From: Macrostomum lignano
Lineage: Eukaryota
Reading direction: 5' to 3'
Assembly: GCA_002269645.1 (NCBI GenBank)
Contig: NIVC01000651.1
Coordinates: 1 to 64,000 of the forward strand
Length of the DNA stretch: 64,000 nt
Shown here: positions 9,037 to 62,713 of the stretch, piece after piece
How positions within the stretch are numbered: position 1 is the stretch's first letter
Layout: each line of letters begins with the position of its first letter
The notes under the pieces: generated by a model
Seen by the model: only the letters and a program-made list of their open reading frames with translations
Told to the model about the DNA's origin: nothing
Database searches by the model: none
Position numbers and translations under genes: made by a program

Positions 9037-9868
9037 CTGCTGCGGGGTCAGGATTGCGGACTCAAACAAACCTGCTGATTTGGGGTCAGGGCGGACTCAA
9101 ACTAAACCTGCTGATTTGGGGTCAAGGCGGACTCAAACTAAACCTGCTGATTTGGGGTCAAGGCGGACTCAAACTAAACCTGCTGATTTGGGGTCAGGGC
9201 GGACTCACACTAAACCTGCTGATTTGGGGTCAGGGCGGACTCACACTAAACCTGCTGATTTGGGGTCAGGGCGGACTCAAACTAAACCTGCTGATTTGGG
9301 GTCAAGGCGGACTCAAACTAAACCTGCTGATTTGGGGTCAAGGCGGACTCAAACTAAACCTGCTGATTTGGGGTCAGGGCGGACTCACACTAAACCTGCT
9401 GATTTGGGGTCAGGGCGGACTCACACTAAACCTGCTGATTTGGGGTCAGGGCGGACTCAAACAAACCTGCTGATTTGGGGTCAGGGCGGACTCAAACTAA
9501 ACCTGCTGATTTGGGGTCAAGGCGGACTCAAACTAAACCTGCTGATTTGGGGTCAAGGCGGACTCAAACTAAACCTGCTGATTTGGGGTCAGGGCGGACT
9601 CAAACTAAACCTGCTGATTTGGGGTCAGGGCGGACTCACACTAAACCTGCTGATTTGGGGTCAGGGCGGACTCAAACTAAACCTGCTGATTTGGGGTCAG
9701 GGCGGACTCACACTAAACCTGCTGATTTGGGGTCAGGGCGGACTCACACTAAACCTGCTGATTTGGGGTCAGGGCGGACTCACACTAAACCTGCTGATTT
9801 GGGGTCAGGGCGGACTCACACTAAACCTGCTGATTTGGGGTCAGGGCGGACTCACACTAAACCTGCTG
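9037..9868 (-). repeat. 36-nt tandem array that makes up a DNAJC2 5'UTR intron (each unit GTTTAG...CTGAC...CAGCAG on -)
   Basis: About 23 copies. The array starts at donor GCAGCAG|GTTTAG (GT at 9862-9861) and ends at acceptor CCTGACCCCGCAG(CAG), 4-7 nt before the ATG. Confidence 0.85.
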
Positions 9869-10423
9869 CCTAGGGTTCCTTAAAAGAACTCTAATAGAAT
9901 TAAAGATCAACCAAGAAGTGCCAACAAGTCAGCGGGGAGCCAAGGCTACAAACAGCTCTATATTTGGAAACAGGAGCGGTGCTATGTACACAGCAGCAGC
10001 AAATCTTCAGTCTGGCCAACAGCGTGAATGAAAAACACAAAAGCAAAAAGCCAAGCAGCGCTGCTCAACAGAAGCTCAGAAGAAAAGGAAAAAAACCGGG
10101 AAATCCGACAAAAAAAGAGAATAAATTTAAATTTAATCCAACTTAGATAAAAGGAGGTCTCATGTGATTTTAGAAAATAAATTAGTGACGGCACAAGCAG
10201 GCCGCGGCATCCTACCGTACGGCAGTGAAATAGACCGCTTTAAGCATTGAGATAAAAGCCGGGCATCCGCTTAGCAGCATACGGTAGCGAGACTATAAGC
10301 AAAAATATTCGCGCGCGACAGGAGCCCGGAATAACAAACCGACGGCGATATGCATTTCAAATATTGATTTATGAAAATAACACGTGCTGAACAGCCAATC
10401 GCAAAGTTGGTAAAGTACACAGC

Positions 10424-10616
10424 GGGCCGTATGCAGAAAGCCTAGTCCAGACTAGCTAGTCCGGACTTGGGTAGTTCAGTCTATAGTCTATGGTCCAGCT
10501 AGCATAGTTCTGCTATAGTAGACTGGTCTAACTTTGTGTTTCTGCATACCAAATCCAAGTCCAGACTAGCTTTTCAAGACCGGACTACCCTAGACAGAGC
10601 TTTCTGCATACGGCCC
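10424..10616. mobile_element. MITE, 193 bp, with perfect 18-bp terminal inverted repeats
   Basis: GGGCCGTATGCAGAAAGC (10424-10441) and GCTTTCTGCATACGGCCC (10599-10616); internal TAGTCCAGACTAG-type subrepeats; no clear TSD. Confidence 0.7.
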
Positions 10617-10649
10617 ATTGTTTCGGCTAGCCTGGCTTTCTGCCATGTA

Positions 10650-12352: not shown

Positions 12353-15300
12353 TCAGAGTATGAGCTCGGCACTGGAGTGCCCGTTGTCAGCTGAGTGCTG
12401 TCCAGGCCGGGAGAAGCCCGCGTGCACCATGACGGGCTGCTGATGATGCAGGCGGGACCGCCCGACAAGACGGCCGACTGAAAAAGTGGAATTCACGCTG
12501 AGCGAGTTCAGCGCCTTGGCGCTTTCCGAGAGCAGCGCGCCACCAGAGGCTGAGGATGCCTCCCTGCAAAGTTGCGATTAAGCAAAGTAAGTGAATGAGT
12601 GAGCCAGTGGGTGAGTGAGTGAGCGGGTGAGTCAGTGAGAGTTGGTGAATAAGGGCCAGTGAGAGTTGTGTGAATAAGGGCCAGTGAGAGTTGGTGAATA
12701 AGGGCCAGTGAGAGTTGTGTGAATAAGGGCCAGTGAGAGTTGGTGAATAAGGGCCAGTGAGAGTTGGTGAATAAGGGCCAGTGAGAGTTGGTGAATAAGG
12801 GCCAGTGAGAGTTGGTGAATAAGGGCCAGTGAGAGTTGGTGAATAAGGGCCAGTGAGAGTTGGTGAATAAGGGCCAGTGAGAGTTGGTGAATAAGGGCCA
12901 GTGAGAGTTGGTGAATAAGGGCCAGTGAGAGTTGGTGAATAAGGGCCAGTGAGAGTTGGTGAATAAGGGCCAGTGAGAGTTGGTGAATAAGGGCCAGTGA
13001 GAGTTGGTGAATAAGGGCCAGTGAGAGTTGGTGAATAAGGGCCAGTGAGAGTTGGTGAATAAGGGCCAGTGAGAGTTGGTGAATAAGGGCCAGTGAGAGT
13101 TGGTGAATAAGGGCCAGTGAGAGTTGGTGAATAAGGGCCAGTGAGAGTTGGTGAATAAGGGCCAGTGAGAGTTGGTGAATAAGGGCCAGTGAGAGTTGGT
13201 GAATAAGGGCCAGTGAGAGTTGGTGAATAAGGGCCAGTGAGAGTTGGTGAATAAGGGCCAGTGAGAGTTGGTGAATAAGGGCCAGTGAGAGTTGGTGAAT
13301 AAGGGCCAGTGAGAGTTGGTGAATAAGAGTCAGTAGAAGTGGGTCAGTAGTGAGCAAACCCGTGGGTCAGTAGTGAGCAAATCCGTGGTCAGTAGTGAGC
13401 AAATCCGTGGGTCAGTAAGTAGTGAGCAAATCCGTGGGTCAGTAGTGAGCAAATCCGTGGGTCAGTAGTGAGCAAATCCGTGGGTCAGTAGTGAGCAAAT
13501 CCGTGGGTCAGTAGTGAGCAAATCCGTGGGTCAGTAAGTAGTGAGCAAATCCGTGGGTCAGTAGTGAGCAAATCCGTGGGTCAGTAAGTAGTGAGCAAAT
13601 CCGTGGGTCAGTAAGTAGTGAGCAAATCCGTGGGTCAGTAGTGAGCAAATCCGTGGTCAGTAGTGAGCAAATCCGTGGGTCAGTAAGTAGTGAGCAAATC
13701 CGTGGTCAGTAAGTAGTGAGCAAATCCGTGGGTCAGTAGTGAGCAAATCCGTGGGTCAGTAGTGAGCAAATCAGTGGGTCAGTAAGTAGTGAGCAAATCT
13801 GTGGGTCAGTAGTGAGCAAACCCGTGGTCAGTAGTGAGCAAATCCGTGGGTCAGTAAGTAGTTAGCAAATCCGTGGGTCAGTCACCTGGCCCGGTCACCG
13901 CTGGCGTGTCTGCCGAGTCCGCGCAGGTTCAGGTGGTCTCCGCTGCTGCGCAGAGCCTCTAGCGGCTGCTGCGGCGGCGCCTCCTCCAGGCAGGGGGTGA
14001 CGCATTCCGGCGAGTTCAGCAGCACCTCCAGCGCCTCCTCCACGCTCGGCCGGTCCTTGGGCTCGAACTGCCAGCAGCGGCCGACCAGAGCGCGCAGCTC
14101 CGGCGTGGCGTCGGCGGGGAAGGCGGTGAAGAGGGTGAGGCCGCGGCTCACCTGACTGATGACCTGCTGCTGGCTGAGGTGCTGGAAGGGGAACTTGCCG
14201 AAGGTGACAATCTCGTACAGCACAACAGCGTAGGACCACATGTCGCTGTTCACGGTGAAGTACATGTACTGGATGGACTCGGGCGGCATCCAGCGCACTG
14301 GCACGAGCTTGTTGTTCTGCACCCGATAGTACTCCTTGATGTAGCGCGCGAGCCCAAAGTCGCCCACCTTCACCTGCGAAAGGCAAAGGTTGGCACAGCA
14401 GTCATGCCCACTCCGATGACACAGGGTGAACAGCAGTCCTAACTCTCTCATCGTGAGGCACTGTGCACTGGGGGTCGGCTCTAGTAATGCGGCCGGGTTA
14501 CCGCTGGGCTACTGAGGAGCTCAGCCTAATATGCCACTCGCCTGGAAGTGCAAGCCTCTCATTCACTTCAGCTGCAGACCTTCATTGCAGACCTCAAGAC
14601 AAAGACTCCCTGATATTCAAGCATATGCTCACTGCTGAGCAGCTCACCTGGAACCGGTCATTGATCATGCAGTTCCTGAGCGCCAGGTCCCGGTGCACCA
14701 TATGCCTGTTGTGCAGGTAGTCAATGCCGCGGGCGATGTCAATGGCGTACTGGGTGAGGGCGGCCGGGCAGGTCTCCGGGGAGGTCTTCGTCAGCGCCTG
14801 GGTGCGCCGGGCCATCAGGAAGGACTTGAGGTCGCCGTGGAGGCACATCTCCATCACGATGTAGAAGGGCTGCTCGGCGGTGCACACGCCCAGCAGCTGC
14901 ACGATGTTGTCGTGGCGGAACTGCGACAGCGTAGCGGCCTCCTCCAAGAACTGCATGATGGCCTCCTGCTTCAGGTCGTCGTTCATCACCTTGACGGCGC
15001 AGGAGGTCCAGCCGCTGCGCACGCCGGAAACCAGAAGGTTGACTTCGCCGCCGTAGACTGTGCCGAAGCAGCCCTTGCCCATCTTGCGGTTGAGCACCAC
15101 CTGGGCGAGCGGGTTGGTTCGCTAATCAGTTCGGTCACGGATACGTATGCAGACAGTCGCAGGGCTTGAGGAGTCCGGGTTTTTAAGGAGGTGTCTTGAG
15201 GAGTCCGGGTTTCTGGTGTATTTAGGTGTCCGCCTGTCCGGGATTCAGGTGTCTTTAAGGAGTCTGGGTTTCGGGTATCCGCACTGAGGTGTCCTAGTTG

Positions 15301-25700: not shown

Positions 25701-27238
25701 GCTGCCAGTGACAATTCACTGCCAAATTTCACTGCCAGTGATAACAGACTGTAAGACAGCTGACTATAAAGAATTTGATATTTTGACAGTGAGTTTTGCT
25801 CTCAATTTCTTGGTTAGATCAATGAATGCAAAGGACCTGGCTCTAGGCAGCAGTGCTCCATTGAATCGGTAAACATTGATAGCAGTGTGCAATCTGGGGC
25901 AATCTGCAGCCAAATTTCGGAATTCCGGTTCATATGAACTTCACTCTGCGAAAACAGCGTCTTCGTAACCTTTTCATGTGCTAAATCTTAACTAGCAGCT
26001 TGTTGGGCCTTTCAGTAGCAGCGGCCTTCAGGCCTTCAAGGCGCATACAAGATGCATGCCCCTCACAATCTCCAGATCGCGCACCTGAATGCCTGCGCAT
26101 CCCTGGTCCCGTAGCGGTCCAGCGCGCAGGAGTAAACTCCGTCATCGCTGAGGTGGCCTCGCTGGTAGTGCAGCAGCACTGACAGCTCTGTGTCGCTGCG
26201 GAACGAGCACGAGTGGCAGCGGAATTTAAAGGACGCTAGCAGGTGGTCGACACTCGGCAGATCGGCCAGCTGCTCCGCCTCCGCGGTAGCGTCCGCCTCC
26301 TCGCCTTCCTTGTCTCCCGCGTAGGCAGTCCGCACCAACGCCAGCCCGGTGTCGAACAGGAAGCGCGCAGTCGGCCGCAGCTGCTCGACGCCACTGGCGC
26401 CCGCGGGCTCTGCCGCCACCAGCTGCAGCCGCTTCTGGTGCACGAACAGGTCACCAGCCCGGTGCGGCACCTGGCTGTAATTCAGCACCACCATGTCGGA
26501 GTCCGGCCTCAGACCCGCTTCGCCTTCGCTGAGCAACTGCGGCCCGGGGCACGCCGGACGCGACTGAAGATTGGGCGCCCGGGGCCTTGTTGCTGCTGCA
26601 GGTTGGGGATGCTGGCGCTGCTGATGCTGAAATTGCTGGATTGGCCGCTGAGGATACTGGAGTTGCCGCTGATAATACTGAGGACGTTGGAGTGGCCGCT
26701 GCTCAGTATGCTGGAGTGGCCGCTGCTCAGGATGCTGGAGTGGCCGCTGCTCAGGATGCTGGAGTGGCCGCTGCTCAGGATGCTGGAGTGGCCGCTGCTC
26801 AGGATGCTGGAGTAGCCGCTGCTCAGGATGCTGGAGTGGCCGCTGCTCAGGATGCTGGAGTAGCCGCTGCTCAGGATGCTGGAGTAGCCGCTGCTCAGGA
26901 TGCTGGGTCAGCCACTGCTGTTGATGCTGAATGGGCCGCAAAGGAGTTCCCGCAATCGCAGACGGGGCAGCAGAGGCAAACGGAATCCACGGCAGTGGAA
27001 TAGGCGGCCTCGAGTGGGGAGGTTTGTGCGCATTGCACGGAGGCGCCGGCATGGCCAGCGTGGCGGAGCTGGTGGCGGACTTCAGCAAGCCTGTCTGTTG
27101 GTGCTGGTTCAGTTGGCCTTGCGGCTGGTAGAACTGCTGCATGGAGAGCTGCTGGTACCACTGCTGATGTTGCTGCTGCTGCTGCAGACTCGCCGCTTGC
27201 TGGCCAGAGATGCCCAGCCAAGGCTGCTGCTGCTGCAT
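22777..27238 (-). CDS. Multi-C2H2 zinc-finger protein with Q/P/H-rich N-terminus, about 836 aa
   Basis: Exons 27238-26085, 24822-24370, 23925-23191, 22945-22777 (2511 nt, in frame, all phase-2 GT-AG). Fingers include CHSCSFRSDTELSVLLHYQRGH, CALDRYGTRDAQAFRQHMSRMH (spans a junction), CELCNGLCASASALAKHLAAAH, CPDCGRGF, CAFCQRPFDLARHHLLGHLAERH, CPACSRCFATELQLRDHMLTSGH, CIACPETFQVGLPLTCHLLRSH. An AATAAA on - lies at 22537-22532. Confidence 0.85.
24890..25690. repeat. Intronic minisatellite, 39/40-nt unit (GTTGTGGGTCACCCCCACAGTCTCATGGAGATTGGGCTA), zinc-finger gene intron 1
   Basis: Read directly; each unit carries a small TGTGGG/CCCACA hairpin. Confidence 0.95.
26690..26905 (-). repeat. Coding 24-nt tandem repeat (RPLQHPEQ/RLLQHPEQ x about 9) within zinc-finger exon 1
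   Basis: Visible in ORF 26063..27238. Confidence 0.9.
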
Positions 27239-27637: not shown

Positions 27638-28086
27638 AAGAATAGCCCATAGACAAATTGCCTGTAGAAGATTTGCCTGTAGAAGATTTGCCTGCAGGAG
27701 ATTTGCCTGTAGAAGATTTGCCTGTAGAAGATTTGCATGCAAGAGATTTGCCTGTAGAAGATTTGCCTGCAATGCAATTTGTTCACAAGTGAATTGCCTA
27801 TGAAGTTTTTTTCTTGCCAAGGTTTGCCTGTAGGCCTACAAAGTTTTTTTCTTATAGCACATTTAGCCACATGGCAGATTTGTCTGCATTGCCTCCCCAT
27901 TGCTTAGTAAGTCTTAATAAAGGGATTGAACCTAAATGTGCTATAGGAAAAAAGCATGCAGACAAATCTTGGTAGGGAATTTGCTTGCAGGCAATCAATT
28001 GAGAGCAAATTGCACTGAAGGCAAAGCTTAATGGGCAAATCTTAATAGGTAAATCTTGGTAGTCAACTTGTCTATGGTCAATTCTT
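27638..28086. mobile_element. Degenerate foldback/MITE with about 23-bp imperfect TIRs and 15-bp subterminal repeats
   Basis: AAGAATAGCCCATAGACAAATTG (27638-27660) versus CAACTTGTCTATGGTCAATTCTT (28064-28086); GATTTGCCTGTAGAA units on the left and inverted GCAAATCTT units on the right. Confidence 0.55.
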
Positions 28087-32073: not shown

Positions 32074-32185
32074 CGTCATAGATAGTAACTAGGCCTAGTA
32101 TTTACTATTAAGTTAGTTAATATTTAAACATCTAAATATCATGTTATAAATTATAATCATATAGGCCCCCTACCAATGGCATATG

Positions 32186-32446
32186 CTAGGGTTTTTTTTC
32201 GCCAGAGACAAGGTGTAAAATCACACCTTGTGCCAAATTTCAAGGTGCGATTTTAAGGCTCAGAGTGCAATTTCTCTTGAGTCTTGTTTCAGACAACTGG
32301 GAACATATAGACATGTCTTATGTCTATATGGTTATGGTTAAAATGGTTATAAGACCGCACCTAAATTGCACCTACTTTTTTAATTTCAAGGTGCAATTTT
32401 AAAATTTAGGGTGCATATGCACACTCTGCGCATAAAAAAACCCAAG
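32186..32446. mobile_element. hAT-like MITE, about 260 bp
   Basis: Ends CTAGGGTTTTTTT / AAAAAAACCCAAG, flanked by the direct repeat (G)GCATATG at 32178-32185 and 32446-32453. Confidence 0.6.
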
Positions 32447-32456
32447 GCATATGACT

Positions 32457-32708
32457 AAGACCACCACACACCAAGACCACTACAGCTATTGTTGGCTTAT
32501 TGAGAGGGAGCTACTAATTATTGAGCATATTAAGGGGGGCTACCAATCTTCTAGCATTGCTATTCCTCTCATAGGTTCTTTTCTTGTAGCCTTGTCCTGC
32601 TGGCTCTCTTATTCACTTATCTCTCCTCTAGCACCATCTAATAACACATTAAATCAAATTTCTTCCTTAGCTCCCCCAAGTGTGGTAGTCTTGGTGTGTG
32701 GCGGTCTT
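32457..32708. mobile_element. MITE-like element with about 25-bp imperfect inverted ends
   Basis: AAGACCACCACACACCAAGACCACTAC versus GTAGTCTTGGTGTGTGGCGGTCTT. Confidence 0.5.
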
Positions 32709-41700: not shown

Positions 41701-44700
41701 TGCCTACACCCAGCTCCTGATGTCTGTGCCTACACCCAGCTCCTGATGTCTGTGCCTACACCCAGCTCCTGATGTCTGTGCCTACACCCAGCTCCTGCCT
41801 GATGTCTGTGCCTACACCCAGCTCCTGATGTCTGTGCCTACACCCAGCTCCTGCCTGATGTCTGTGCCTACACCCAGCTCCTGCCTGATGTCTGTGCCTA
41901 CACCCAGCTCCTGATGTCTGTGCCTACACCCAGCTCCTGATGTCTGTGCCTACACCCAGCTCCTGATGTCTGTGCCTACACCCAGCTCCTGATGTCTGTG
42001 CCTACACCCAGCTCCTGATGTCTGTGCCTACACCCAGCTCCTGATGTCTGTGCCTACACCCAGCTCCTGCCTGATGTCTGATGCCTGATGTTTGTGCCTG
42101 ATGTCTGTGCCTACACCCAGCTCCTGCCTGATGTCTGATGCCTGATTCTCCCTCTGATCTGATTCTGCTGTCCCTCTGATCTGATTCTGCTGTCCCTCTG
42201 ATCTGATTCTGCTCTCCCTCTGATCTGATTCTGCTCTCCCTCTGATCTGATTCTACTCTCCCTCTGATCTGATTCTGCTCTCCCTCTGATCTGATTCTAC
42301 TCTCCCTCTGATCTGATTCTGCTCTCCCTCTGATCTGATTCTACTCTCCCTCTGATCTGATTCTGCTCTCCCTCTGATCTGATTCTACTCTCCCTCTGAT
42401 CTGATTCTGCTCTCCCTCTGATCTGATTCTACTCTCCCTCTGATCTGATTCTGCTCTCCCTCTGATCTGATTCTACTCTCCCTCTGATCTGATTCTGCTC
42501 TCTCCTGCGATGCAAAGCGATTCAATACTCACCTGTATTTCCACGCTGTCGAGGGCAGCGGCGCCGGCGGCTCCGGTCCCCGAGGAAGAGGCGGTGGCCT
42601 CCGGCGACGCCTGGCTCGGCGTGGAATCGTCAATGGAGCCCGCGGACTGCTGGCGCTGGTGCTGGCGCTGGTGAGAGTCGGCGAAGGTGCCACTGTTGCT
42701 GCGGTTGCGGTGGTGCTGCGGCTGGTTGAAGTGCCGTCGCGAATTGTACAGCTGCTGGCCGGAGCGGAAGGCCTCCTTGGACGAAGTGAAACTGTAGCGG
42801 CGCTGCTGATGGTGCGGCGGCAGCTGCTGGTACGGCGGGTTCTGCTGACCGTGGGACTCGTTGAAGGAATTCGGTCGCTTGATGAACACGGAGCTCAGAT
42901 TTCGGCGCAGCTGCACCTGTTGGTTTGGGTGTGTGGGGTGAGCTCAAAAGCTAACAGAATCAGATGGTGTTCTCTAAGTAGCTGGTGCGGCTTCACGGGC
43001 AACTGGGTGGGGAGATCTGGGGAGTTGGGTGGGGAGAGCTGGGGAGTTGGGTGGGGAGATCTGGGGAGTTGGGTGGGGAGATCTGGGAGTTGGGTGGGGA
43101 GATCTGGGGAATTGGGTGGGGAGATCTGGGGAGTTGGGTGAGGAGAGCTGGGAGTTGGGTGGGGAGATCTGGGGAATTGGGTGGGGAGATCTAGGGAGTT
43201 GGGTGGGGAGATCTGGGGAGTTGGGTGAGGAGAGCTGGGAGTTGGGGTGGGGAGAGCTGGGAGCTGGGGTGGGGAGAGCTGGGAGTTGGGGTGGGGAGAT
43301 CTGGGGAGTTGGGTGGGGAGATCTGGGGAATTGGGTGGGGAGATCTGGGAGTTGGGGTGGGGAGAGCTGGGAGTTGGGGTGGGGAGAGCTGGGAGTTGGG
43401 GTGGGGAGATCTGGGGAGTTTGGTGGGGAGAGCTGGGAGTTGGGGTGGGGAGAGCTGGGGAATTGGGTGAGAAGAGCTGGGAGTTGGGTGGGGAGATCTG
43501 GGGAGTTGGGTGAGGAGAGCTGGGAGTTGGGGTGGGGAGAGCTGGGAAATTGGGTGAGAAGAGCTGGGAGTTGGGTGGGGAGATCTGGGGAATCGGGTGG
43601 GGAGATCTAGGGAATTGGGTGAGGAGAGCTGGGAGTTGGGGTGGGGAGAGCTGGGGAATTGGGTGGGGAGATCTGGGGAATTGGGTGGGAGATCTGGGAA
43701 TTGGGTGGGGAGATCTGGGGAGTTGGGTGGGGAGAGCTGGGGAGTTGGGTGGGGAGATCTGGGGAGTTGGGTGGGGAGATCTGGGAGTTGGGTGGGGAGA
43801 TCTGGAGAATTGGGTGGGGAGATCTGGGGAGTTGGGTGAGGAGAGCTGGGAGTTGGGTGGAGAGATCTGGGGAATTGGGTGAGGAGAGCTGGGAGTTGGG
43901 GTGGGGAGAGCTGGGGAATTGGGTGAGGAGAGCTGCGAGTTGGGTGGGGAGATCTAGGGAATTTGGTGGGGAGAGCTGGGAGTTGGGTGGGGAGATCTGG
44001 GGAATTGGGTGAGGAGAGCTGGGAGTTGGGGTGGGGAGATCTAGGGAATTTGGTGGGGAGAGCTGGGAGTTGGGGTGGGGAGATCTAGGGAATTTGGTGG
44101 GGAGAGCTGGGAGTTGGGGTGGAGAGATCTGGGGAATTGGGTGAGGAGAGCTGGGAGTTGGGGTGGGGAGATCTAGGGAATTTGGTGGGGAGAGCTGGGA
44201 GTTGGGGTGGGGAGAGCTGGGGAATTGGGGTGGGGAGATCTGGCGAGTTGGGTGGGGAGATCTGGCGAGTTGGGGTGGGGAGATCTGAGAGTTTGGGTGG
44301 GGAGATTGGGGAGTTGGGTGCGGAGATCTGGGAGTTGGGGTGGGGAGATCTGGCGAGTTGGGGTGGGGAGATCTGAGAGTTTGGGTGGGGAGACTGGGGA
44401 GTTGGGTGCGGAGAGCTGGGAGTTGGGGTGGGGAGATCTGGGGAGTTGGGTGCAGAGATCTGGGAGTTGGGGTGGGGAGATCTTGGGAATTGGGTGGGGA
44501 GAGCTGGCAGTTTGGATGGGGAGATCTGGCGAGTTGGGTGGGGATGCTAGTTGGGATGCGGAGATCAGGGGAACTGGGTGGGAAGATTTGGAATTGGGTG
44601 GGGAGACCTGGAAGTGGTTAAGAAGACCTGGAATTGGTCGGGTAGAGTAAATACCTGAATTAAGTGGGGAATTATAGAGTTTTTGCTTAATTGTTTTAAA

Positions 44701-47454: not shown

Positions 47455-47932
47455 GGGGTCGCTTCACAAGCTCGAAATTTCGCAACCTCGAAAACTTCCT
47501 TTCACAAACCCGAAACTCCATAAGCTCGAAATTTCACAACCTCGAAATTTCACAACCTCGAAAACCATTTTAGCAGCCACTTTCACAAACCCGAAACTTC
47601 ATAAGCTCGAAATTTCATATCCTCGAAAATTTTAGCAAGCGACTTCACTAGCTCGAAATTTCACAAGCTCGAAAACCATTTTAGCAGCCGACTTCACAAG
47701 CTCGAAAACCATTTTAGCAGCCGACTTCACAAGCTCGAAAATTTTAGCAGCCGACTTCACAAGCGAGGTTGTTTCGAGGTTTGTGAAAGTGGCTGCTAAA
47801 ATGGTTTTCGAGCTTGTGAAATTTCGAGCTTGTGAAATTTCGAGCTTATGAAATTTCGAGCTTATGAAATTTCGAGCTTATGAAAGTAACTGGTTTCGAG
47901 CTTGTGAAATTTCGAGCTTGTGAAAGCAACCC
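47455..47932. mobile_element. Foldback-type (probably Mutator-like) non-autonomous element with modular inverted arms
   Basis: GGGTCGCTTCACAAGCTCGAAATTTC on the left versus GAAATTTCGAGCTTGTGAAAGCAACCC on the right; CTCGAAATTTCACAA modules invert near 47765; direct repeat AATTCGTG at 47447-47454 and 47933-47940. Confidence 0.75.
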
Positions 47933-48288: not shown

Positions 48289-50021
48289 TCATCCATAATA
48301 ATGGCAGTGCGAATATTCGGTTTCCGAAGCTGCTGTGCTCGGAGTTGCAGTCTGGGCGACAGTGCAGGTGCAGGCACGGTTGCGCGTCCTTTGTTTCCTG
48401 CCATGATTATAGCCACAATAGCTTTGATGCCAGCCATACCAGCTGCTCCAGGGGCTCCACTGGCACCAGCCAATAAATCTGGTCTGCTGCTGCCAAGGCT
48501 TGGCCAGCGGACTCGGCACCGCTTCGATGAGGCAGCTGCAGTCTCTCCTCCTGCTGCGCTGCTGGTTCCTATTGCACCCTGTGAAGTTGCGGTGTTCGAA
48601 TATCCGAAAATGTTAAACGGAAAATGTTACTATAGAAATATCTATAACATCGCGTCTCACCCGAACTCCACAAGCTCCAGCCTTTCCAGGCGCACCAGCC
48701 GATGAACAGTTCATTCGCCGATGGGCCGTCGCATTTCGCTGCCGCCGCCTGCGGCTCCGGGCACTGGCACTGGCGGGTGCGCCGTTTTGATCCGACGTGA
48801 CAGGCAGGCGTCCAGGCAGACCAGCCGCTCCAGGAGCACCAGCCGCCGCTTACTGGCAGGAATTTTGAGGGAAATAAAAGCCCGGAGCTGCAATAAATTT
48901 CCTCTGGATTTGTCAAGGAACCCGCTGGGGCCTCTAGCATCAAAATGGACAAAGACTCACTCCGGCTGAGGAACCCGCTGGGGTCTGTGGCATCAAAATG
49001 GACAAAGACTCACTCCGGCTGAGGAACCCGCTGGGGTCTGTGGCATCAAAATGGACAAAAACTCACTCCGGATGAGGAACCCGCTTGGGTCTGTGACATC
49101 AAAATGGACAAAGACTCACTCCGGCTGAGGAACCCGCTGGGGTCTTTGACATCAAAATGGACAAAAACTCACTCCGGATGAGGAACCCGCTTGGGTCTGT
49201 GACATCAAAATGGACAAAGACTCACTCCGGCTGAGGAACCCGCTGGGGTCTTTGACATCAAAATGGACAAAGACTCACTCCGGCTGAGGAACCCGCTGGG
49301 GTCTGTGGCATCAAAATGGACAAAGACTCACTCCGGCTGAGGAACCCGCTTGGGTCTGTGACATCAAAATGGACAAAGACTCACTCCGGCTGAGGAACCC
49401 GCTGGGGTCTGTGGCATCAAAATGGACAAAGACTCACTCCGGATGAAGAACCAGCTGGGGTCTGTGGCATCAAAATGGACAAAGACTCACTCCGGATGAA
49501 GAACCCGCTTGGGTCTTTGACATCAAAATGGACAAAGACTCACTCCGGCTGAGGAACCCGCTTGGGTCTGTGACATCAAAATGGACAAAGACTCACTCCG
49601 GCTGAGGAACCCGCTGGGGTCTGTGGCATCAAAATGGACAAAGACTCATTCCGGCTGAGGAACCCGCTGGGGTCTGTGATATCAAAATGGACAAAGACTC
49701 ACTCCGGCGCCGGCTGGTCAGGGCCAAGACTCGACAGCCAGCTGGAAGAGCAGACGGGGCTCCTGCGGTGTCGCCCAGCAGCCGGCATTGGTCAGGCGAG
49801 CACCAGACAACGCCGAAGCAGGCCGAGCCCATCACCTCGCAGATGGCGGCGCATTCGACTTCGGAACGGGCGTCAAGGATGGCAGTGGAGGAAGATGTTC
49901 CTGAAGCTGCTCCGTCACTTCCCCAGGCAGCCTGATCCGAGGTGTACATGTACTGGTCGGCGGCGAACGACAGAGATGTCAGCAGCAGCAGGACCCAGGC
50001 AGTCAGAGTAGCGAGGTACAT
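48289..50021 (-). CDS. Small secreted protein: signal peptide + PAN/apple-like domain + three thrombospondin type-1 (TSR)-like repeats, about 266 aa
   Basis: Exons 50021-49703, 48852-48661, 48578-48289 (801 nt, in frame, both introns phase 1). Signal MYLATLTAWVLLLLTSLSFA; ARSEVECAAICEVMGSACFGVVWCSPDQCRL; GGWCSWSGWSAWTPAC...RRTRQCQC; GWCAWKGWSLWS..C....RSRRRDCSC; GWCQWSPWSSW...C...RTRNRACTC. Confidence 0.8.
48915..49708 (-). repeat. 53-nt donor-junction array (about 15 copies of (G)CCGGA|GTGAGT...) filling intron 1 of the PAN-TSP1 gene
   Basis: The first copy is the real exon 1 donor (GT at 49702-49701). Confidence 0.9.
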
Positions 50022-52798: not shown

Positions 52799-55025
52799 TC
52801 ACTCGATAAACAGGATGCTGTGGAACTGCGCCTGGCAGAGCCGGGACACCTCCTCGGTGACCAGGATGAGGTTGGCCGGCCGGAACTGAGTCACCAGGGC
52901 GAAGAAGTCGCGCCTGTCGAACTTCTTGGCCACCAGCCAGGCGTCGCCGGCGGTCTTGGCGACGGTCTCCGTGTCGACGAGGTCGCCGTGCCTGCAGTGG
53001 TCGGCGTGCACGTCGGCGCAGAGGCGCATGAGGTCCCGCTTGACTGCCAGCACGCCGGGCCGCTTGGAGCCCTCGGGCTGCACAAACACGGTGCTCTTCT
53101 GCGCCGAGTTCATGTGGTTGAAGTACAGGAAGCGGATGTGGCTGTCGGCGCCACCGCCGGAGCCGGAAGCAGCCGAGGCGGAGGCAGCGCTGGCCTCGCT
53201 GAGCTGCTGGCTGCAGGTCTGCACGGTGTCGCTGGCGTGGCGCATCAGCGGCTGCAGCAGACGGTCCAGCGCCAGGTACTGCTCGTACGTCACGGGGTCT
53301 CCGGCGTCCACAAACAGGCAGAGGCTGCTGCGGCCGGACCGGTACACCAGCATGTGGCACTCGGCCAGCGAGCCGCCGTCCGGCCCCGTCAGGAACAGAC
53401 GCGGCACTGAGCCCAGCTGGCTCGGGTCGTCAAGGTTGGGTGGCCCCGTGATGAAGCTGAAAAGTGAGTAGAAATGCCAAGCCAATTTTTGTCTCACTTT
53501 GAGCTCGGTAAAGCTTCTAGCCGATGACTCACCGTCCAAAGGCGCCAGAGCTGCCGATGCCCTTGTCCAGGTTTCTGAGGTCGTCCTCGGCGTGCCTGGG
53601 GAACAGGCTGTGCACCAGGTAGGCGTACACGCAGCGGGTGTCCGTGGGGTGCAGGGAGGTCCACACCAGCTGGTCGCTGTGCAGGTAGCAGGCAAAGCGC
53701 ACCCGGGAGAAGGTGGCCTGCACCCGCTGCACCAAGCAGTGCACCTGCAGGAAGGCCCGCTTGCTCAGCGGCAGAAACGTGACGCCCCGGTAGACCTCTA
53801 GCAGCGTGGATTGGTAGATGGAGAAGCACGAATGGTTTGGGTCCGCCAGGTACCTGCACGGCGGGTTGAGTGAGGATGGCCGAGGATTGAGTAAGCAGAA
53901 ATGATGCGGGAGGAAAGGTGGAACTGAAAGCACAAGCGTTAGGGCTAAAACAAACTGCAGGCACAGACAGCACAACAGAACTGAAGAAGTGGTTGCAGAA
54001 ACACACTGCAGACACAGACAGCACAGCAGAACTGAAGAAGTGGTTGCAGAAACACACTGCAGACACAGACAGCACAGCAGAACTGAAGAAGTGGTTGCAG
54101 AAACACACTGCAGACACAGACAGCACAGCAGAACTGAAGAAGTGGTTGCAGAAACACACTGCAGACACAGACAGCACAGCAGAACTGAAGAAGTGGTTGC
54201 AGAAACACACTGCAGACACAGACAGCACAGCAGAACTGAAGAAGTGGTTGCAGAAACACACTGCAGACACAGACAGCACAGCAGAACTGAAGAAGTGGTT
54301 GCAGAAACACACTGCAGACACAGACAGCACAGCAGAACTGAAGAAGTGGTTGCAGAAACACACTGCAGACACAGACAGCACAGCAGAACTGAAGAAGTGG
54401 TTGCAGAAACACACTGCAGACACAGACAGCACAGCAGAACTGAAGAAGTGGTTGCAGAAACACACTGCAGACACAGACAGCACAGCAGAACTGAAGAAGT
54501 GGTTGCAGAAACACACTGCAGACACAGACAGCACAACAGAACTGACCTGCTGAAGAAGTGGTTGCACTTCTGGCGCAGAATTTCCACGTTGCCCCGCTCA
54601 AGAGTCATAGCGATGGAGCCCTTGAACAGGCGGTACATCAGGTAGGCCTGGTGCAGCAGCTCATGGCAGACAACGTCCTGCACATTCTCTGCCAGGTACT
54701 CGGCGTCCTCCTTGGCCTCAGCTGCGGCCTGCTGCTGCAGGGGGATCTTGGGCACGGAGAAGCGCATGACAAACCAGTAGCCGGGCTCGGGCTGCAGGAA
54801 CACCTGGCGGCTCTTCAGGGTGGTGAGGCAGCGGACCGGCTGGTCGCTGAAGTCGGCGGTGAAGCGAACCACCGCCTCGGCCAGGCCCACGCATTTCACC
54901 TGCAGGTTGAGCTCGGTGCTTGCCGGATAAAAGTACACAATTTTCTGGGCTTCCTCGCCCTCCCGAGTGCAGAGGCTGGGGCTGAAGATGAAGAACTGCT
55001 CGCACTGGGCCTCGCTGTCTTCCAT
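52799..55025 (-). CDS. CCZ1: Vacuolar fusion protein CCZ1 homolog (Mon1-Ccz1 Rab7 GEF subunit), about 485 aa
   Basis: Exons 55025 (or 55061)-54547, 53853-53533, 53456-52799 (1458 nt from 55025, in frame). Motifs FFIFSPSLCTREGEEAQKIVYFYP, VGLAEAVVRFT, FLPLSKRAFLQVH, DQLVWTSL, RFLYFNHMNSAQKST, KTAGDAWLVAKKFDRR. Confidence 0.93.
53955..54565 (-). repeat. 51-nt exon-end-derived array (about 12 copies) in CCZ1 intron 1
   Basis: Unit on - is TGCAACCACTTCTTCAG plus TTCTGCTGTGCTGTCTGTGTCTGCAGTGTGTTTC. Confidence 0.95.
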
Positions 55026-55731
55026 GCGGCCGGCGAAGCAGCAGCGGCAGAAGCGGGACATGAGTGAAATTTGCCAGATGGCCTACTGACGAAAGTAGTC
55101 TGTCTAGTGATTTACTGCTGCTACTATAGAAATCATTGATGAAAATACCGCCTGACCCTCTCTGTAAGTAGGTCATGTGCAAGCAGCCAATGGCACAGCC
55201 GCTTCAACTGGGTGCAGCCTATTCATCTGCATACTAACCACAGCCAACTCTGCTTAACTTGCAGCACTGACGGTGAATGCACTAATCCACTCGGCTACTG
55301 TGGTTGCTTCAACCTTTACCTCTTGGCTGGTAAGCAAGCATAGTAGTAACACTAAGTTAAATACAAGCTGGTGAATCACGGCAAATGAAGTGGAAAAGAT
55401 ATGCCTGCTTTAAATATCAATAATTTTAACAAGCGAGGCGAGCGAGCGACAAGCAGTTTATGTTTAGAAAATTTAGCTTTAATTTACAGGCCAAAGTGCA
55501 GCTGAAATTTGTTGAAAACTAGAATGGAACGGTACATAATAAAAGCTTTAATACGCATAGAAATATACTATATAAGAAAGTACAAATATAATAAAAGTGC
55601 GTAAAATTGCTGCATCGAAGAGCTGAGCCAGACTGAAGTCAGCGGAGTTCAGTTAGAAAATTGACAAACAAGCGAAACACATATGAACGAATGCAGCCCC
55701 TGCGTCACACCGGCTTCTGGACCCAATGACG

Positions 55732-58700
55732 TCACTTCCGGCTGCCGCCGCTGCGCTGATGCTGATGGTGCCCGCCGGAGCGGGAGGCGGACTTCCGGGA
55801 AGCGGCCGAGCTGGGCGAGTCCTGCGACGAAGACTGAGCCAGCTGCTGGCCCGCCGAGGCGATCGACTTCTTGGGCGGCGGCGCAGCGGCGTCGGTGGAA
55901 TGCGACGACGACGTCGACTGCTGCCTGCTGGCGCCCGGCGGCTTCTTGGCGCCCGACTGCAGAAACGGGTGCAGCTCGTCGGCCGGAGCGCCGGGCAGGT
56001 CGATGTCGTGCGTGCGCGTCTTGCGCCGCTTGGCGTCCGGACTGGCGCCGGAGCTGGCCGGGCGCTTCTTGTCCGGACTGGCGCCGGCCAGGGACTGATC
56101 GGACAGGGTCTGGTCCGCGTCGTCGATCTGCGGGTTGAGCGACGAATTCATAAAGTCAAATCGCCTACTCATATGAGTAGTATAACTGAGCACGCATGAG
56201 CACTGCCATGGACTGGCAGGATCGCAACTCCCACACCTTCAGAATGCATACCTGCGTACTAACCGCAGCCAAGTCTGCTTAACTCAGCCGAAAATCGATC
56301 CTCAAAACAAAACTCTGTAAGCCAAAGTTCACTAGGTGAGGAGATGGATTTCACTAACAGCGCTGAAAGTTAAGCAGAGTTGATCGTGGCTAGTACGCTG
56401 TCTGTGTCAGCCGTGACAAGTGACAAATTAAGCTAAGCTGCAAATGCTGCAGATTTCACCTGCTGTGATTGGGCAGCAGCTCTAAGCTGCAGATTTCACC
56501 TACTGTGATTGGGCAGCAGCTCTAAGCTGCAGATTTCACCTACTGTGATTGGGCAGCAGCTCTAAGCTGCAGATTTCACCTACTGTGATTGGGCAGCAGC
56601 TCTAAGCTGCAGATTTCACCTACTGTGATTGGGCAGCAGCTCTAAGCTGTAGATTTCACCTGCTGTGATTGGGCAGCAGCTCTAAGCTGCAGATTTCACC
56701 TACTGTGATTGGGCAGCAGCTCTAAGCTGCAGATTTCACCTGCTGTGATTGGGCAGCAGCTCTAAGCTGCAGATTTCACCTACTGTGATTGGGCAGCAGC
56801 TCTAAGCTGCAGATTTCACCTACTGTGATTGGGCAGCAGCTCTAAGCTGCAGATTTCACCTACTGTGATTGGGCAGCAGCTCTAAGCTGCAGATTTCACC
56901 TACTGTGATTAGGCAGCAGCTCTAAGCTGTAGATTTCACCTGCTGTGATTGGGCAGCAGCTCTAAGCTGCAGATTTCACCTGCTGTGATTGGGTAGCAGC
57001 TCTAAGCTGCAGATTTCACCTGCTGTGATTGGGCAGCAGCTCTAAGCTGCAGATTTCACCTACTGTGATTGGGCAGCAGCTCTAAGCTGCAGATTTCACC
57101 TGCTGTGATTGGGCAGCAGCTCTAAGCTGCAGATTTCACCTACTGTGATTGGGCAGCAGCTCTAAGCTGCAGATTTCACCTGCTGTGATTGGGCAGCAGC
57201 TCTAAGCTGTAGATTTCACCTGCTGTGATTGGGCAGCAGCTCTAAGCTGCAGATTTCACCTACTGTGATTGGGCAGCAGCTCTAAGCTGCAGATTTCACC
57301 TACTGTGATTGGGCAGCAGCTCTAAGCTGCAGATTTCACCTGCTGTGATTGGGTAGCAGCTCTAAGCTGCAGATTTCACCTGCTGTGATTGGGCAGCAGC
57401 TCTAAGCTGCAGATTTCACCTGCTGTGATTGGGCAGCAGCTCTAAGCTGTACACAAAGCCCTCAGAGCTGCCACACTTGTGGCCATCTCGCAGCGGTTCC
57501 CGTATTATGCAGCGCATTACAAGTAAGCTGAGGCTGAGGCTATCATTCTGCTCAGCCAGTCCCCGCAGCGGCAAATCACCTCGGGTGCGACTGGCAGGAA
57601 CAGCAGCATGTCCGGGTCCGCCTCCTCGTCCGAGCTGAGCAGCGCCTGCACCGGCTCGCAGCGCTCAACGTCCACCTCCTCGTCCGAATTGCTGGCAGAC
57701 GGCACCGCAGCGGCCTTCGGCTCCGCGTCCTCGTCCGATAGGTCGAACTCGCTCTCGCGCTCCTCGTACTCGACGTTCTCGTCCAGCTCTTTGAAATCCG
57801 GTGCGAACGCGCTCCAGTTTTGCACCTGGGAGGAGGGCGGAGCGCAATTTAGTGTAAAGTATGACAAGTTAGCGAACTGGTTGCTGGGCTTGAGATAGCG
57901 ACTGTGCCTGCTACCAGTGAGTCACTGCTTGCCGCTCCCAGCCCAGTGAGTCACTGCTTGCCGCTCCCAGCCCAGTGAGTCACTGCTTGCCGCTACCAGC
58001 CCAGTGAGTCACTGCTTGCCGCTCCCAGCCCAGTGAGTCACTGCTTGCCGCTACCAGCCCAGTGAGTCACTGCTTGCCGCTTCCAGCCCAGTGAGTCACT
58101 GCTTGCCGCTCCCAGCCCAGTGAGTCACTGCTTGCCGCTCCCAGCCCAGTGAGTCACTGCTTGCCGCTCCCAGCCCAGTGAGTCACTGCTTGCCGCTACC
58201 AGCCCAGTGAGTCACTGCTTGCCGCTCCCAGCCCAGTGAGTCACTGCTTGCCGCTACCAGCCCAGTGAGTCACTGCTTGCCGCTTCCAGCCCAGTGAGTC
58301 ACTGCTTGCCGCTCCCAGCCCAGTGAGTCACTGCTTGCCGCTCCCAGCCCAGTGAGTCACTGCTTGCCGCTCCCAGCCCAGTGAGTCACTGCTTGCCGCT
58401 CCCAGCCCAGTGAATCAGTCCAGGGGTTTGCAGAATGGGTGCCCGAGAGTGTGGATACAGTAAAAATGAGCGGCCGACCGCAGCGCACCTGGCTCTGGCT
58501 CCAAACGGTCACGAGCCCGTTAGAAATGGAGCAGATGATGGGCCGCAGCGGGTGCCACACGACATCCAGCAGCGTCTCGCCCTTGGTGCCCTGCAGCATC
58601 TTGACCATGGCGCCGCCGATGCGGTCCCAGATGTAGATGGAGTGCGCCTTCATCGATCCCGCGCACACAAACTCGCCGTCTCCGCTGAAGCAGCACTTGC

Positions 58701-61700
58701 GCCAATGGTTGCCAGTCACCAGGTCCTGCGGGATGGTCACAGGTAATGGCAGATTGCTCTAAGGTGCTGAGGGGGGACTGCTCTAAGGCTCAGGGGGGGA
58801 CTGCTCTAAGGTGCTGAGGGGGGACTGCTCTAAGTTGCTGAGGGGGACTGCTCTAAGGCTCAGGGGGGACTGCTCTAAGTTGCTGAGGGGGGACTGCTCT
58901 AAGGCTCAGGGGGACTGCTCTAAGTTGCTGAGGGGGACTGCTCTAAGGCTCAGGGGGGACTGCTCTAAGTTGCTGAGGGGGACTGCTCTAAGGCTCAGGG
59001 GGGACTGCTCTAAGTTGCTGAGGGGGACTGCTCTAAGATGCTGAGGGGGGACTGCTCTAAGGCTCAGGGGGGACTGCTCTAAGTTGCTGAGGGGGACTGC
59101 TCTAAGGCTCAGGGGGGACTGCTCTAAGTTGCTGAGGGGGACTGCTCTAAGGCTCAGGGGGGACTGCTCTAAGTTGCTGAGGGGGACTGCTCTAAGATGC
59201 TGAGGGGGGACTGCTCTAAGGCTCAGGGGGGACTGCTCTAAGTTGCTGAGGGGGACTGCTCTAAGATGCTGAGGGGGGACTGCTCTAAGGCTCAGGGGGG
59301 ACTGCTCTAAGTTGCTGAGGGGGACTGCTCTAAGATGCTGAGGGGGGACTGCTCTAAGGCTCAGGGGGGACTGCTCTAAGTTGCTGAGGGGGACTGCTCT
59401 AAGATGCTGAGGGGGGACTGCTCTAAGGCTCAGGGGGGACTGCTCTAAGTTGCTGAGGGGGACTGCTCTAAGATGCTGAGGGGGGACTGCTCTAAGGCTC
59501 AGGGGGGACTGCTCTAAGTTGCTGAGGGGGACTGCTCTAAGATGCTGAGGGGGACTGCTCTAAGGCTCAGGGGGGACTGCTCTAAGTTGCTGAGGGGGAC
59601 TGCTCTAAGTTGCTGAGGGGGACTGCTTTAAGGCTCAGGGGGACTGCTCTAAGTTGCTGAGGGGGACTGCTCTAAGTTGCTGAGGGGGACTGCTCTAAGG
59701 CTCAGGGGGGACTGCTCTAAGTTGCTGAGGGGGACTGCTCTAAGTTGCTGAGGGGGGACTGCTCTAAGGCTCAGGGGGACTGCTCTAAGTTGCTGAGGGG
59801 GACTGCTCTAAGTTGCTGAGGGGGACTGCTCTAAGGCTCAGGGGGGACTGCTCTAAGTTGCTGAGGGGGACTGCTCTAAGTTGCTGAGGGGGGACTGCTC
59901 TAAGGCTCAGGGGGGACTGCTCTAAGTTGCTGAGGGGGACTGCTCTAAGTTGCTGAGGGGGACTGCTCTAAGGCTCAGGGGGACTGCTCTAAGTTGCTGA
60001 GGGGGACTGCTCTAAGGCTCAGGGGGGACTGCTCTAAGTTGCTGAGGGGGACTGCTCTAAGGCTCAGGGGGGACTGCTCTAAGTTGCTGAGGGGACTGCT
60101 CTAAGATGCTGAGGGGGACTGCTCTAAGGCTCAGGGGGGGACTGCTCTAAGTTGCTGAGGGGGACTGCTCTAAGATGCTGAGGGGGGACTGCTCTAAGGC
60201 TCAGGGGGGACTGCTCTAAGTTGCTGAGGGGGACTGCTCTAAGTTGCTGAGGGGGACTGCTCTAAGGCTCAGGGGGGACTGCTCTAAGTTGCTGAGGGGG
60301 ACTGCTCTAAGTTGCTGAGGGGGACTGCTCTAAGATGCTGAGGGGGACTGCTCTAAGGCTCAGGGGGACTGCTCTAAGTTGCTGAGGGGGACTGCTCTAA
60401 GTTGCTGAGGGGGACTGCTCTAAGATGCTGAGGGGGACTGCTCTAAGTTGCTGAGGGGGACTGCTCTAAGTTGCTGAGGGGGACTGCTCTAAGATGCTGA
60501 GGGGGGACTGCTCTAAGGCTCAGGGGGACTGCTCTAAGTTGCTGAGGGGGACTGCTCTAAGATGCTGAGGGGGACTGCTCTAAGTTGCTGAGGGGGACTG
60601 CTCTAAGTTGCTGAGGGGGACTGCTCTAAGATGCTGAGGGGGGACTGCTCTAAGGCTCAGGGGGACTGCTCTAAGTTGCTGAGGGGGACTGCTCTAAGTT
60701 GCTGAGGGGGACTGCTCTAAGTTGCTGAGGGGGACTGCTCTAAGATGCTGAGGGGGGACTGCTCTAAGGCTCAGGGGGAGTGTTTTAGAGTGCAGCGAGT
60801 TGTCAAAGTGCGACTAAGGTGGCTAGTTAGATCCCAAAGGCCGCACCTTCAGCTTCTGCAGCGGCTCGACCTCCTGGTTGCGCCTGGCCTCCAGCACGAT
60901 GTCGCAGGAGTACACGCGCACTATGCGATCCGAGCAGTTCAGCAGGAAGTTGCGCTGCTTGCGCGCGAACTCGATCGATTTTACAGCCGTGTTGGACGTG
61001 GCCGGTGTGGCTCGGAAGGCCGCCACCTGGCGGAGCGTGCGCGTCTGAATGGATTCGACCGGGTGAAATGCGCTGATGGAGAGTAACAGATTTGCATAGT
61101 AACTGGTACACAGTCGGGTTTAGTCTCTCAACCCACCTGGTACACAGCCACCCAACCCATCTGGTACACAGTCAGGTTTAGTCTCTCAACCCACCTGGTA
61201 CACAGCCACCCAACCCATCTGGTACACAGTCAGGTTTAGTCTCTCAACCCACCTGGTACACAGCCACCTAACCCACCTGGTACACGGCCATCCAACCCAC
61301 CTGGTACACAGCCACACAACCCACCTGGTATACAGCCACCCAACCCACCTGGTACACGGCCATCCAACCCACCTGGTACACAGCCACCCAACCCACCTGG
61401 TACACAGTCACCCAACCCACCTGGTACACAGTCACCCAACCCACCTGGTACACAGTCACCCAACCCACCTGGTACACAGCCACCCGACCCACCTGGTACA
61501 CAGCCACCCGACCCACCTGGTACACAGCCACCCGACCCACCTGGTAGAGGGCCATCCAACCCACCTGGTACACAGCCACCCAACCCACCTGGTACACAGC
61601 CACCTAACCCACCTGGTACAGTCACCCAACCCACCTGGTACAAAGTCACCCAACCCACCTGGTACACAGCCACCCAACCCACCTGGTACACAGCCACCCA

Positions 61701-62713
61701 ACCCACCTGGTACACGGCCACCCAACCCACCTGGTACAGTCACCCAACCCACCTGGTACAAAGTCACCCAACCCACCTGGTACACAGCCACCCAACCCAC
61801 CTGGTACACAGCCACCCAACCCACCTGGTACACGGCCACCCAACCCACCTGGTACAGTCACCCAACCCACCTGGTACAAAGTCACCCAACCCACCTGGTA
61901 CACAGCCACCCAACCCACCTGGTACACGGCCACCCAACCCACCTGGTACACAGCCACCCAACCCACCTGGTACACGGCCACCCTGCCGCGCGAGTTGCCA
62001 ACGTAGACGTGATCGCCGCGCGAGTTGAAGGCGGCCGCGGTGCTGAACTCGCCCTCCTCGTCGGGCGGCAGGCAGCTGTGGCTGCCGGTTTCAGCGTCCA
62101 CCAGCACTGGCGGGTGACGCATCGGGCACACCAGCAGCCGCTGGCTGTTCCGGGGGTGAAAGGCAGCTCTGGAAATGGGCAGGTGAAGTCGGTCAAGCTT
62201 TCTCATCAGCTGCCGCACCGGACAACTTTAACAGTGCGGAAGGCTGTGCCAGGTAGACTGGGAATTCTACCTGACAAGTTCTGCCGCGCCGGAATGGAAA
62301 GCAGTTGGAAAAAAATCAGAATGCTATTCAACACAAAATCCTTAAATAGCGAAGATTTGACAGCCCCCAGCAACGCACTTGAGCACAGGCGAGGGGAAGC
62401 GGAACACCTTGTCGCACTCGCCAGACAGCACATCCCACAGCGCCACCGTGTTATCCGTGGAAGCCGTCAGCAGCTTCTTGGAGTCGCGGCTCCAGCTGAC
62501 GGAGCAGACGGTGACCGCGTGCGCCGTGATGGTCTTGGCGATGCCGCGGGTCAGGAAGTCCCAGATCACCACGCGGCCATCGTTGCAGCCGACGGCCAGC
62601 AAGGTGCCGAACCTGTTGAAGGCGCAGGTCACGGCGAAGGAGACGCAGTCCAGCACGCCGTCGTTTTCCTCCGGGTAGTTCTTGTGGAAGGACTCCAGCA
62701 GCTCCAGGTTCAT
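55732..62713 (-). CDS. RBBP5: Retinoblastoma-binding protein 5 (WD40 subunit of COMPASS/MLL H3K4 methyltransferase complexes), about 537 aa
   Basis: Exons 62713-62379, 62168-61967, 61044-60847, 58725-58489, 57825-57580, 56127-55732 (1614 nt, in frame). MNLELLESF..NYPEE.DG, GTLLAVGCNDGRVVIWDFLTRGIAK, TAVKSIEFARK, WRKCCFSGDGE, NWSAFAPDFKELDENVEYEERESEFD, DIDLPGAPADELHP. Confidence 0.97.
56256..56397. mobile_element. Short degenerate MITE with about 30-bp imperfect inverted ends; a related sequence occurs near 55232-55265
   Basis: CGTACTAACCGCAGCCAAGTCTGCTTAACT versus AGTTAAGCAGAGTTGATCGTGGCTAGTACG. Confidence 0.5.
56447..57450. repeat. Intronic minisatellite, 40-nt unit (GCAGATTTCACCTACTGTGATTGGGCAGCAGCTCTAAGCT), about 25 copies, RBBP5 intron 5
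   Basis: Read directly. Confidence 0.95.
57912..58412. repeat. Intronic minisatellite, 29-nt unit (AGTGAGTCACTGCTTGCCGCTCCCAGCCC), about 17 copies, RBBP5 intron 4
   Basis: Read directly. Confidence 0.95.
58755..60780. repeat. About 2-kb intronic minisatellite, about 22-nt unit (GGGGGACTGCTCTAAG + TTGCTGA/GCTCA/ATGCTGA), RBBP5 intron 3
   Basis: Read directly; three unit variants are interspersed. Confidence 0.95.
61105..61981 (-). repeat. 24-nt donor-junction array (GTGGCCGTGTACCAG|GTGGGTTGG and variants, about 30+ copies), RBBP5 intron 2
   Basis: The first copy is the end of RBBP5 exon 2 and its donor (GT at 61966-61965). Confidence 0.95.

Follow-up and report, generated by a model that had tools for sequence, protein, structure and literature searches.

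Introns in the first 64 kb of a contig of the flatworm Macrostomum lignano hold minisatellites whose repeat unit matches the splice site of the gene in which they lie. The locus raises the question of whether splice sites are amplified by a process directed at them or are caught by chance in ordinary tandem duplications. The window analysed here comprises positions 1-64000 of contig NIVC01000651.1 (Mlig_3_7 assembly, GCA_002269645.1). It agrees with locus L002 of this contig at identical coordinates, without a mismatch in 18,269 nt, and a full-length RBBP5 model derived from it shares 99% identity with an M. lignano protein. An initial annotation of this window had singled out five arrays, at the genes DNAJC2, MARF1, CCZ1 and RBBP5 and at an open reading frame (ORF) labelled 'PAN-TSP1', and had proposed that segments anchored at splice sites are preferentially amplified. 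Our analysis favours the other answer: with a probability of about 0.8, the arrays are ordinary minisatellites of the 'mirage' or F7-IVS7 (intervening sequence 7) type, and a splice-site-specific mutational process is unnecessary.

To place the arrays relative to authentic junctions, the transcript-based NCBI proteins P0241 (RBBP5), P0244 (CCZ1), P0247 (MARF1) and P0248 (DNAJC2) were mapped on the window, with splice sites refined to GT/GC-AG. The mapping yielded 21 introns in four genes, with no mismatch around any junction, and fixed three of the junctions in question: the RBBP5 donor, the CCZ1 donor and the MARF1 acceptor. Tandem Repeats Finder (TRF) and the sequence itself confirmed that all five arrays are where the initial annotation had put them, each with the unit it had described. 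Their TRF periods are 24, 36, 51, 53 and 58 nucleotides (nt), with 3-31 copies and 91-99% matches. The arrays are, as had been claimed, tandem amplifications of the host gene's own exon-intron junction in which identical pseudo-sites abound (RBBP5 intron 2 has 32, the 53-nt array 13), and the resemblance between unit and junction goes beyond chance similarity: the units are true copies. The annotated products use the first donor in RBBP5 and CCZ1 and the last acceptor in MARF1, and they contain no repeat-encoded residues.

Introns without arrays measure 76-396 nt in the four mapped genes, 76 nt being the shortest confirmed. Introns with arrays measure 378-2121 nt, of which 40-448 nt remain when the arrays and one transposon are subtracted. 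Arrays account for 68% of all intron bases in RBBP5, CCZ1, MARF1 and DNAJC2. Together with the short residual lengths, this indicates that the arrays grew inside ordinary short introns.

Two further assembled copies of the region were compared with the window, in place of introns from sister species; no other Macrostomum species was present among the RBBP5 homology matches. One copy is near-identical (L003). The other is a more diverged homeolog (L001, L004 and L005), with ~3% difference in unique intron sequence.

The minisatellite of RBBP5 intron 2 lies on the minus strand at 61103-61983, as delimited by TRF, sequence and protein P0241. Exon 2 ends in GTGGCCGTGTACCAG/GTGGGTTGG (here and below, a slash marks the exon-intron boundary or its position in the protein); the last exon nucleotide is 61967 and the authentic donor follows directly. 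The 24-nt unit is GTGGCTGTGTACCAG followed by GTGGGTTGG, that is, 15 exon nt and 9 intron nt, in agreement with the initial description of 15 exon nt plus GTGGGT, and the first array copy covers the last 15 nt of exon 2 (61981-61967). About 31 copies are followed by a 58-nt higher-order tail, and the intron carries 32 further copies of CAGGTGGGT, all identical pseudo-donors. The product reads VAVYQ/TRTLRQ (P0241), so the first donor is used. The intron measures 322, 650 and 922 nt across the three assembled copies, and its array is also present in L001 (~11 degenerate copies) and L003. The suggestion that units are selected to remain in frame fared poorly: in RBBP5 the frame is lost beyond the fifth unit through a 22-nt variant, and only two of the four junction-spanning periods are multiples of three.

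Other features of RBBP5 were recorded alongside the array. A non-canonical GC donor considered for intron 1 was rejected, as the annotated protein shows a canonical CTCAA/GTGCGT. The annotated coding region begins 6 nt before the ATG and 2 nt past CCCTCAG/ (62719-62727), which looks like a spliced-leader acceptor. From the RBBP5 stop to the CCZ1 start there are 707 nt on the same strand (55025-55732), and fused RBBP5 plus CCZ1 models exist in UniRef (P0245, P0246); both genes may belong to a single polycistronic unit.

In CCZ1 intron 1, the minisatellite occupies 53948-54566 on the minus strand (TRF, sequence and the junction of P0242-P0244). Exon 1 ends in TGCAACCACTTCTTCAGCAG/GTCAG, with 54547 as its last nucleotide and the authentic donor directly after it; the product reads NHFFSR/YLADP (P0242-P0244). 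The founder copy (54566-54508) holds 17 exon nt, then CAG/GTCAG, then intron sequence. It is followed by 11.7 donor-less units of 51 nt, which carry 17 exon nt (17-20) and the intron start and lack 8 nt including the donor. Sequence and protein junction both uphold the earlier description of this unit as exon end plus intron start with the donor deleted.

The three assembled copies preserve different stages of this array. In L001 there are two copies of a 59-nt junction-spanning segment, both with the donor CAG/GTCTGT, and this plain two-copy duplication is the founder state. L003 also has two copies, the second without the 8 nt that hold the donor. In the window the donor-less unit has reached ~12 copies, 99% identical among themselves, for a total of 12.7. 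In this single case, the order of events agrees with expansion having begun only once the second donor was gone. It also fits the idea that repeated donors are mildly harmful, again in this one case, and RBBP5 expanded with all of its donors intact. The proposed selection for donor-deleted units thus keeps the CCZ1 homeolog order in its favour and has one case to its name. What CCZ1 does provide is a documented three-step array history across homeologous copies.

The acceptor-side array lies in MARF1, in the intron at HFALE/VVDLL, and is divided into two minus-strand blocks: an upstream block of 3 copies at 38567-38741 (TRF and sequence) and a downstream block of ~1.5 copies at 37609-37710 (sequence, with the acceptor fixed by P0247). 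Of the 58 nt in each unit, 44 are intronic and include the acceptor CTCTTACCAG/, and 14 are exonic (GTGGTGGACCTGCT). In the final copy this acceptor is the authentic one (last intron nucleotide 37623), beyond which the array covers 14 exon nt (37622-37609). The exon, which starts at 37622, encodes VVDLLRQ and the product reads HFALE/VVDLLRQ (P0247). The unit is thus acceptor plus 14 exon nt, as first reported. The homeolog L004 has 4.6 uninterrupted copies and the window ~5. The interruption in the window is an 856-nt insertion resembling a miniature inverted-repeat transposable element (37711-38566, no strand assigned), whose ends are 13-bp terminal inverted repeats (CAGTGGTGTGATT) and which is flanked by an 8-bp target-site duplication (GAGCCACC). 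It is absent at L004, and the length of the target duplication suggests a hAT-type element.

A second candidate for the MARF1 case, a 26-nt array at 41517-42126 (CATCAG/GAGCTGG.., in frame), was rejected: P0247 places the acceptor, GCGCAG/GTGACG, at 41444 and the array is internal to the intron. The first mapped MARF1 intron (44999) is of the GC-AG class, GAAGAG/GCGAGT ... CCAACAG/GTGCAG, and is supported by P0247.

The two remaining arrays are less firmly tied to a junction. A 53-nt minisatellite of 15 copies lies on the minus strand at 48916-49708, at the putative donor of a TSP1-like ORF, the 'PAN-TSP1' of the initial annotation; its placement draws on TRF, sequence and a phase-1 model. The putative donor is ..GCGCCGGA/GTGAGTC (..GCCGGA/GTGAGT), with 49703 as the last exon nucleotide, and the unit ends ..CAGCCGGA, so that 6 exon nt are shared, or 8-9 nt if a 6-nt slip is allowed. 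There are 13 identical pseudo-donors, and donor and acceptor are phase-1 compatible in our ab initio gene model. The reported copying of exon nt plus GTGAGT is present in the sequence as these 6 shared nt, whereas the host is an unannotated gene, with no called gene in the contig record. Pfam gave no matches on the raw ORFs, and the spliced pieces gave sub-threshold TSP1 matches and none to PAN. The junction, predicted by that ab initio model, is accordingly termed putative. L001 has 3 copies of the unit, the window 15 and L003 ~17, and the predicted intron measures 214, 850 and 956 nt across the three assembled copies.

At DNAJC2, a 36-nt array of 22.6 copies (9041-9868, minus strand; TRF and sequence) lies directly upstream of the ATG (9034). 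Its unit, GTTTAGTGTGAGTCC...AAATCAGCAG, runs from GT to AG, and 10.8 copies are present in the homeolog L005. The stretch may be an intron of the 5' untranslated region (UTR), an outron or 5' flank. The claim that the array copies a whole 36-nt intron stands as regards the GT...AG units; the intron status did not find support, the shortest confirmed intron being 76 nt. In intron 2 of the same gene, an array with a 35-nt unit (6733-7040) occupies all but 70 nt of the 378 nt. This unit opens with the sense-strand consensus GTGAGT and is no copy of the real donor, GGG/GTGAGGAAGC.

Across the region, all arrays are at the same sites in all copies, with differing copy numbers. Array intron lengths differ 1.1- to 4.5-fold among the three assembled copies. 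The sole array-free RBBP5 intron, intron 1, measures 209-210 nt in two copies and 329 nt in the third (L001, 10344-10672), where it holds a 119-nt non-tandem insertion; the rest of that intron is ~3% different from the window. With states of two to three copies preserved in the homeologs, these comparisons indicate that one tandem duplication occurred across the junction, and that copy number then drifted.

We propose the following course of events. M. lignano introns would be natively short (~75-450 nt without repeats) and very prone to tandem duplication of 18-86-nt segments, and a founder duplication would now and then straddle a donor or acceptor by chance. Because use of the exon-proximal site leaves the mRNA unaltered, such spanning duplications would be tolerated just like those lying wholly within an intron. 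Copy number would then change through replication slippage or unequal exchange, so that the splice site, or a mutated version of it, comes to be repeated up to ~30 times. This presumes that pseudo-sites are neutral and that transcripts using internal sites are silent or rapidly decayed. Tolerance through exon-proximal site choice would be analogous to what happens in human F7. All four features checked for the 'mirage'/F7-IVS7 class were found: a head-to-tail array with a unit of ~10-160 bp, a terminal unit lying over the exon-intron boundary, use of the exon-proximal site (judged from annotated products) and unstable copy number.

Might the arrays instead be selected splicing devices, serving as decoy or ratchet sites for recursive splicing or as regulators of splicing efficiency or isoform choice? 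Every RBBP5 unit has CAG/GTGGGT, the same as the authentic donor, the arrays are kept in all homeologs, and in CCZ1 expansion is confined to the copy that had lost its second donor. Yet gene copies that are almost identical differ 2- to 6-fold in copy number, splicing at internal sites would cause a frameshift in arrays with periods of 53 and 58 nt, and it is solely the exon-proximal site that appears in the annotated products. Introns known for recursive splicing are far longer than 2.2 kb, and those of the window are all below that length. The mark of such splicing, YAG/GTRAGT in a very long intron, was not found in the RBBP5 and DNAJC2 arrays, where the units have CAG/GT and the introns measure 0.8-0.9 kb. 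We regard a selected splicing function as very improbable.

The proposal of the initial annotation was that a splice-related or AG/GT-coupled mutational process preferentially amplifies 24-58-nt segments anchored at splice sites throughout the genome. In its favour, 4-5 arrays in one 64-kb window copy a junction, and three of the four coding cases are at donors. To set this frequency against chance, we used a founder null in which a segment of one period is placed uniformly over every position touching the ancestral intron; a placement was counted as junction-spanning if it included at least 5-8 exon nt and 2-6 intron nt. For the four transcript-anchored genes (n=14 arrays), 2.6-3.6 spanning arrays were expected and 3 observed. 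Adding the receptor gene and the 53-nt array intron (n=20) gave 4.1-5.5 expected and 3-4 observed. The probability of at least the observed number is 0.5-0.87 under this null. In this one small window, the number of junction-spanning arrays matches chance placement.

The properties of the spanning arrays also agree poorly with an anchored process. Their exon overlap is 6, 14, 15 and 17 nt, and this variation shows that there is no fixed anchor point. Their periods (24, 51, 53 and 58) are longer than those of the 16 non-spanning arrays (Mann-Whitney p=0.026), in line with the null, which gives long units more junction overlaps. The distance to any junction is 26-318 nt for at least 16 other intronic arrays, and donor-like motifs showed no sense-strand excess in the 16 non-spanning intronic units (mean best match 4.25 vs 4.69 antisense, of 9; p=0.55). 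Similar arrays also occur outside confirmed introns. An outcome in this window of 3-4 spanning arrays among 14-20, against 3.0-5.5 expected, is the very result that the initial annotation had named as contradicting its proposal, and we consider an anchored process very improbable. That the arrays or their junction overlap are artefacts of mis-assembled long noisy reads is scarcely credible: Mlig_3_7 was assembled from PacBio reads of a genome that is rich in repeats and partly duplicated (PMC5730564), and its exact copy numbers may be unreliable, but the same arrays with the same junction overlap appear in three contigs that were assembled independently of one another and are distinguished by point substitutions.

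Several points weigh against the interpretation of these arrays as ordinary minisatellites at chance frequency. The sample is small (14-20 arrays from one window and 4-6 genes). The null substitutes the present residual intron length and present period for the founder state, and it assumes that junction-spanning and internal duplications are equally tolerated. Three of the four spanning arrays are at donors and one is at an acceptor, which is non-significant yet departs from the 1:1 of the null. The use or silence of pseudo-sites is read from annotated protein models only. Finally, this interpretation does not itself explain why arrays are so extremely dense in M. lignano introns.

This density is evident throughout the window. 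TRF found 34 distinct arrays covering 33% of it. Nearly all genes are on the minus strand, namely DNAJC2, a tyrosine-kinase-like gene, an ANF-receptor-like gene, a C2H2 zinc-finger gene, MARF1, the TSP1-like ORF, CCZ1 and RBBP5, and the GC content at third codon positions (GC3) of the coding sequence is 0.90. An AT-rich block at 28-35.5 kb (28000-35500; 26-46% GC) has no arrays, and arrays seem tied to the GC-rich genic parts of the window. An Rfam scan of the window gave no matches. For the M. lignano genome as a whole, 15% simple and tandem repeats, introns averaging 1.1-1.4 kb and trans-splicing of 38.8% of genes have been reported (PMC5730564).

Some arrays of the window take other forms. 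At 47463-47764 and 47806-47930, two arrays of 16-nt units in opposite orientation (TTCACAACCTCGAAAT vs TTTCGAGCTTGTGAAA) make up a large inverted repeat of tandem repeats. A 24-nt array at 26636-26906 lies within the GC3-rich ORF of a Q-rich protein with SSILSSGY repeats and is probably a coding minisatellite. The stop codon TGA of the kinase ORF overlaps a donor-like CAG/GTGACT (12586-13886). After it come three arrays with 23-, 24- and 8-nt units, with hardly any unique sequence between them, which reach a good acceptor at 12564. The stretch 12586-13886 is either a 3'UTR or an intron made almost wholly of repeats, and its arrays (12586-13882), which belong to the one or the other, were excluded from the array tally.

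The evidence as a whole points to a known repeat type, occurring at a chance rate in a genome whose introns are short and whose minisatellites are highly active. A more ambitious view, that junction-spanning minisatellites occur across the M. lignano genome at a density unmatched in other animals and that selection on splice-site content shapes their expansion, as in CCZ1, seems doubtful to us. If it were true, this transgenic model would offer a natural system for studying how the spliceosome selects one site from as many as ~30 identical donors or acceptors. Tests of splice-site choice could make use of the natural introns of this flatworm, which is open to transgenesis and in which an intron can have up to 32 identical pseudo-donors. 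Gene prediction in M. lignano calls for caution, because in-frame repeat units beside exons can be mis-called as coding.

How do these arrays compare with known systems? Under the model of Rogers, introns are reportedly gained by tandem duplication of an exon segment containing AGGT. As here, tandem duplication doubles a splice signal, and splicing removes the additional copy. Here, by contrast, a pre-existing junction was duplicated with no new intron position, and the result is a multi-copy array in place of a single duplication.

Closer parallels exist, and the claim that such copying of junctions was undescribed as a genome-wide process did not survive a comparison with the literature. Junction-spanning minisatellites have been described in human genes, in the 37-bp variable number tandem repeat of F7 IVS7 and in IFI6 (6-16), CBS IVS13, LMNB2 and PDGF, and exon-proximal site choice was shown experimentally for F7 (PMC1557585). 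In the human F7 type, as in the window, the first monomer spans the exon-intron boundary, so that identical donors recur within the intron. Splicing takes place only or mainly at the most upstream donor, copy number is polymorphic and the units are of similar size (31-100 bp). The present locus differs in having several arrays within 64 kb of one genome, one of them at an acceptor, and its variation is between homeologous gene copies, whereas that of the human type is between alleles. Site use was tested with minigenes in the human case and is deduced from annotation here.

In amphioxus, junction-spanning minisatellites have been named 'mirages' and suggested to be a general phenomenon (PMC3087553). 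The amphioxus arrays likewise extend over a 5' or 3' exon boundary, and many of their units keep AG/GT signals. Normal splicing is undisturbed and array length is unstable, in a genome that is also rich in minisatellites. As far as could be found, the arrays described here are the first of this kind for a flatworm. Compared with mirages, they belong to the Platyhelminthes, their units are shorter (24-58 nt vs 10-160 nt), and in CCZ1 they document the loss of a repeated donor before expansion.

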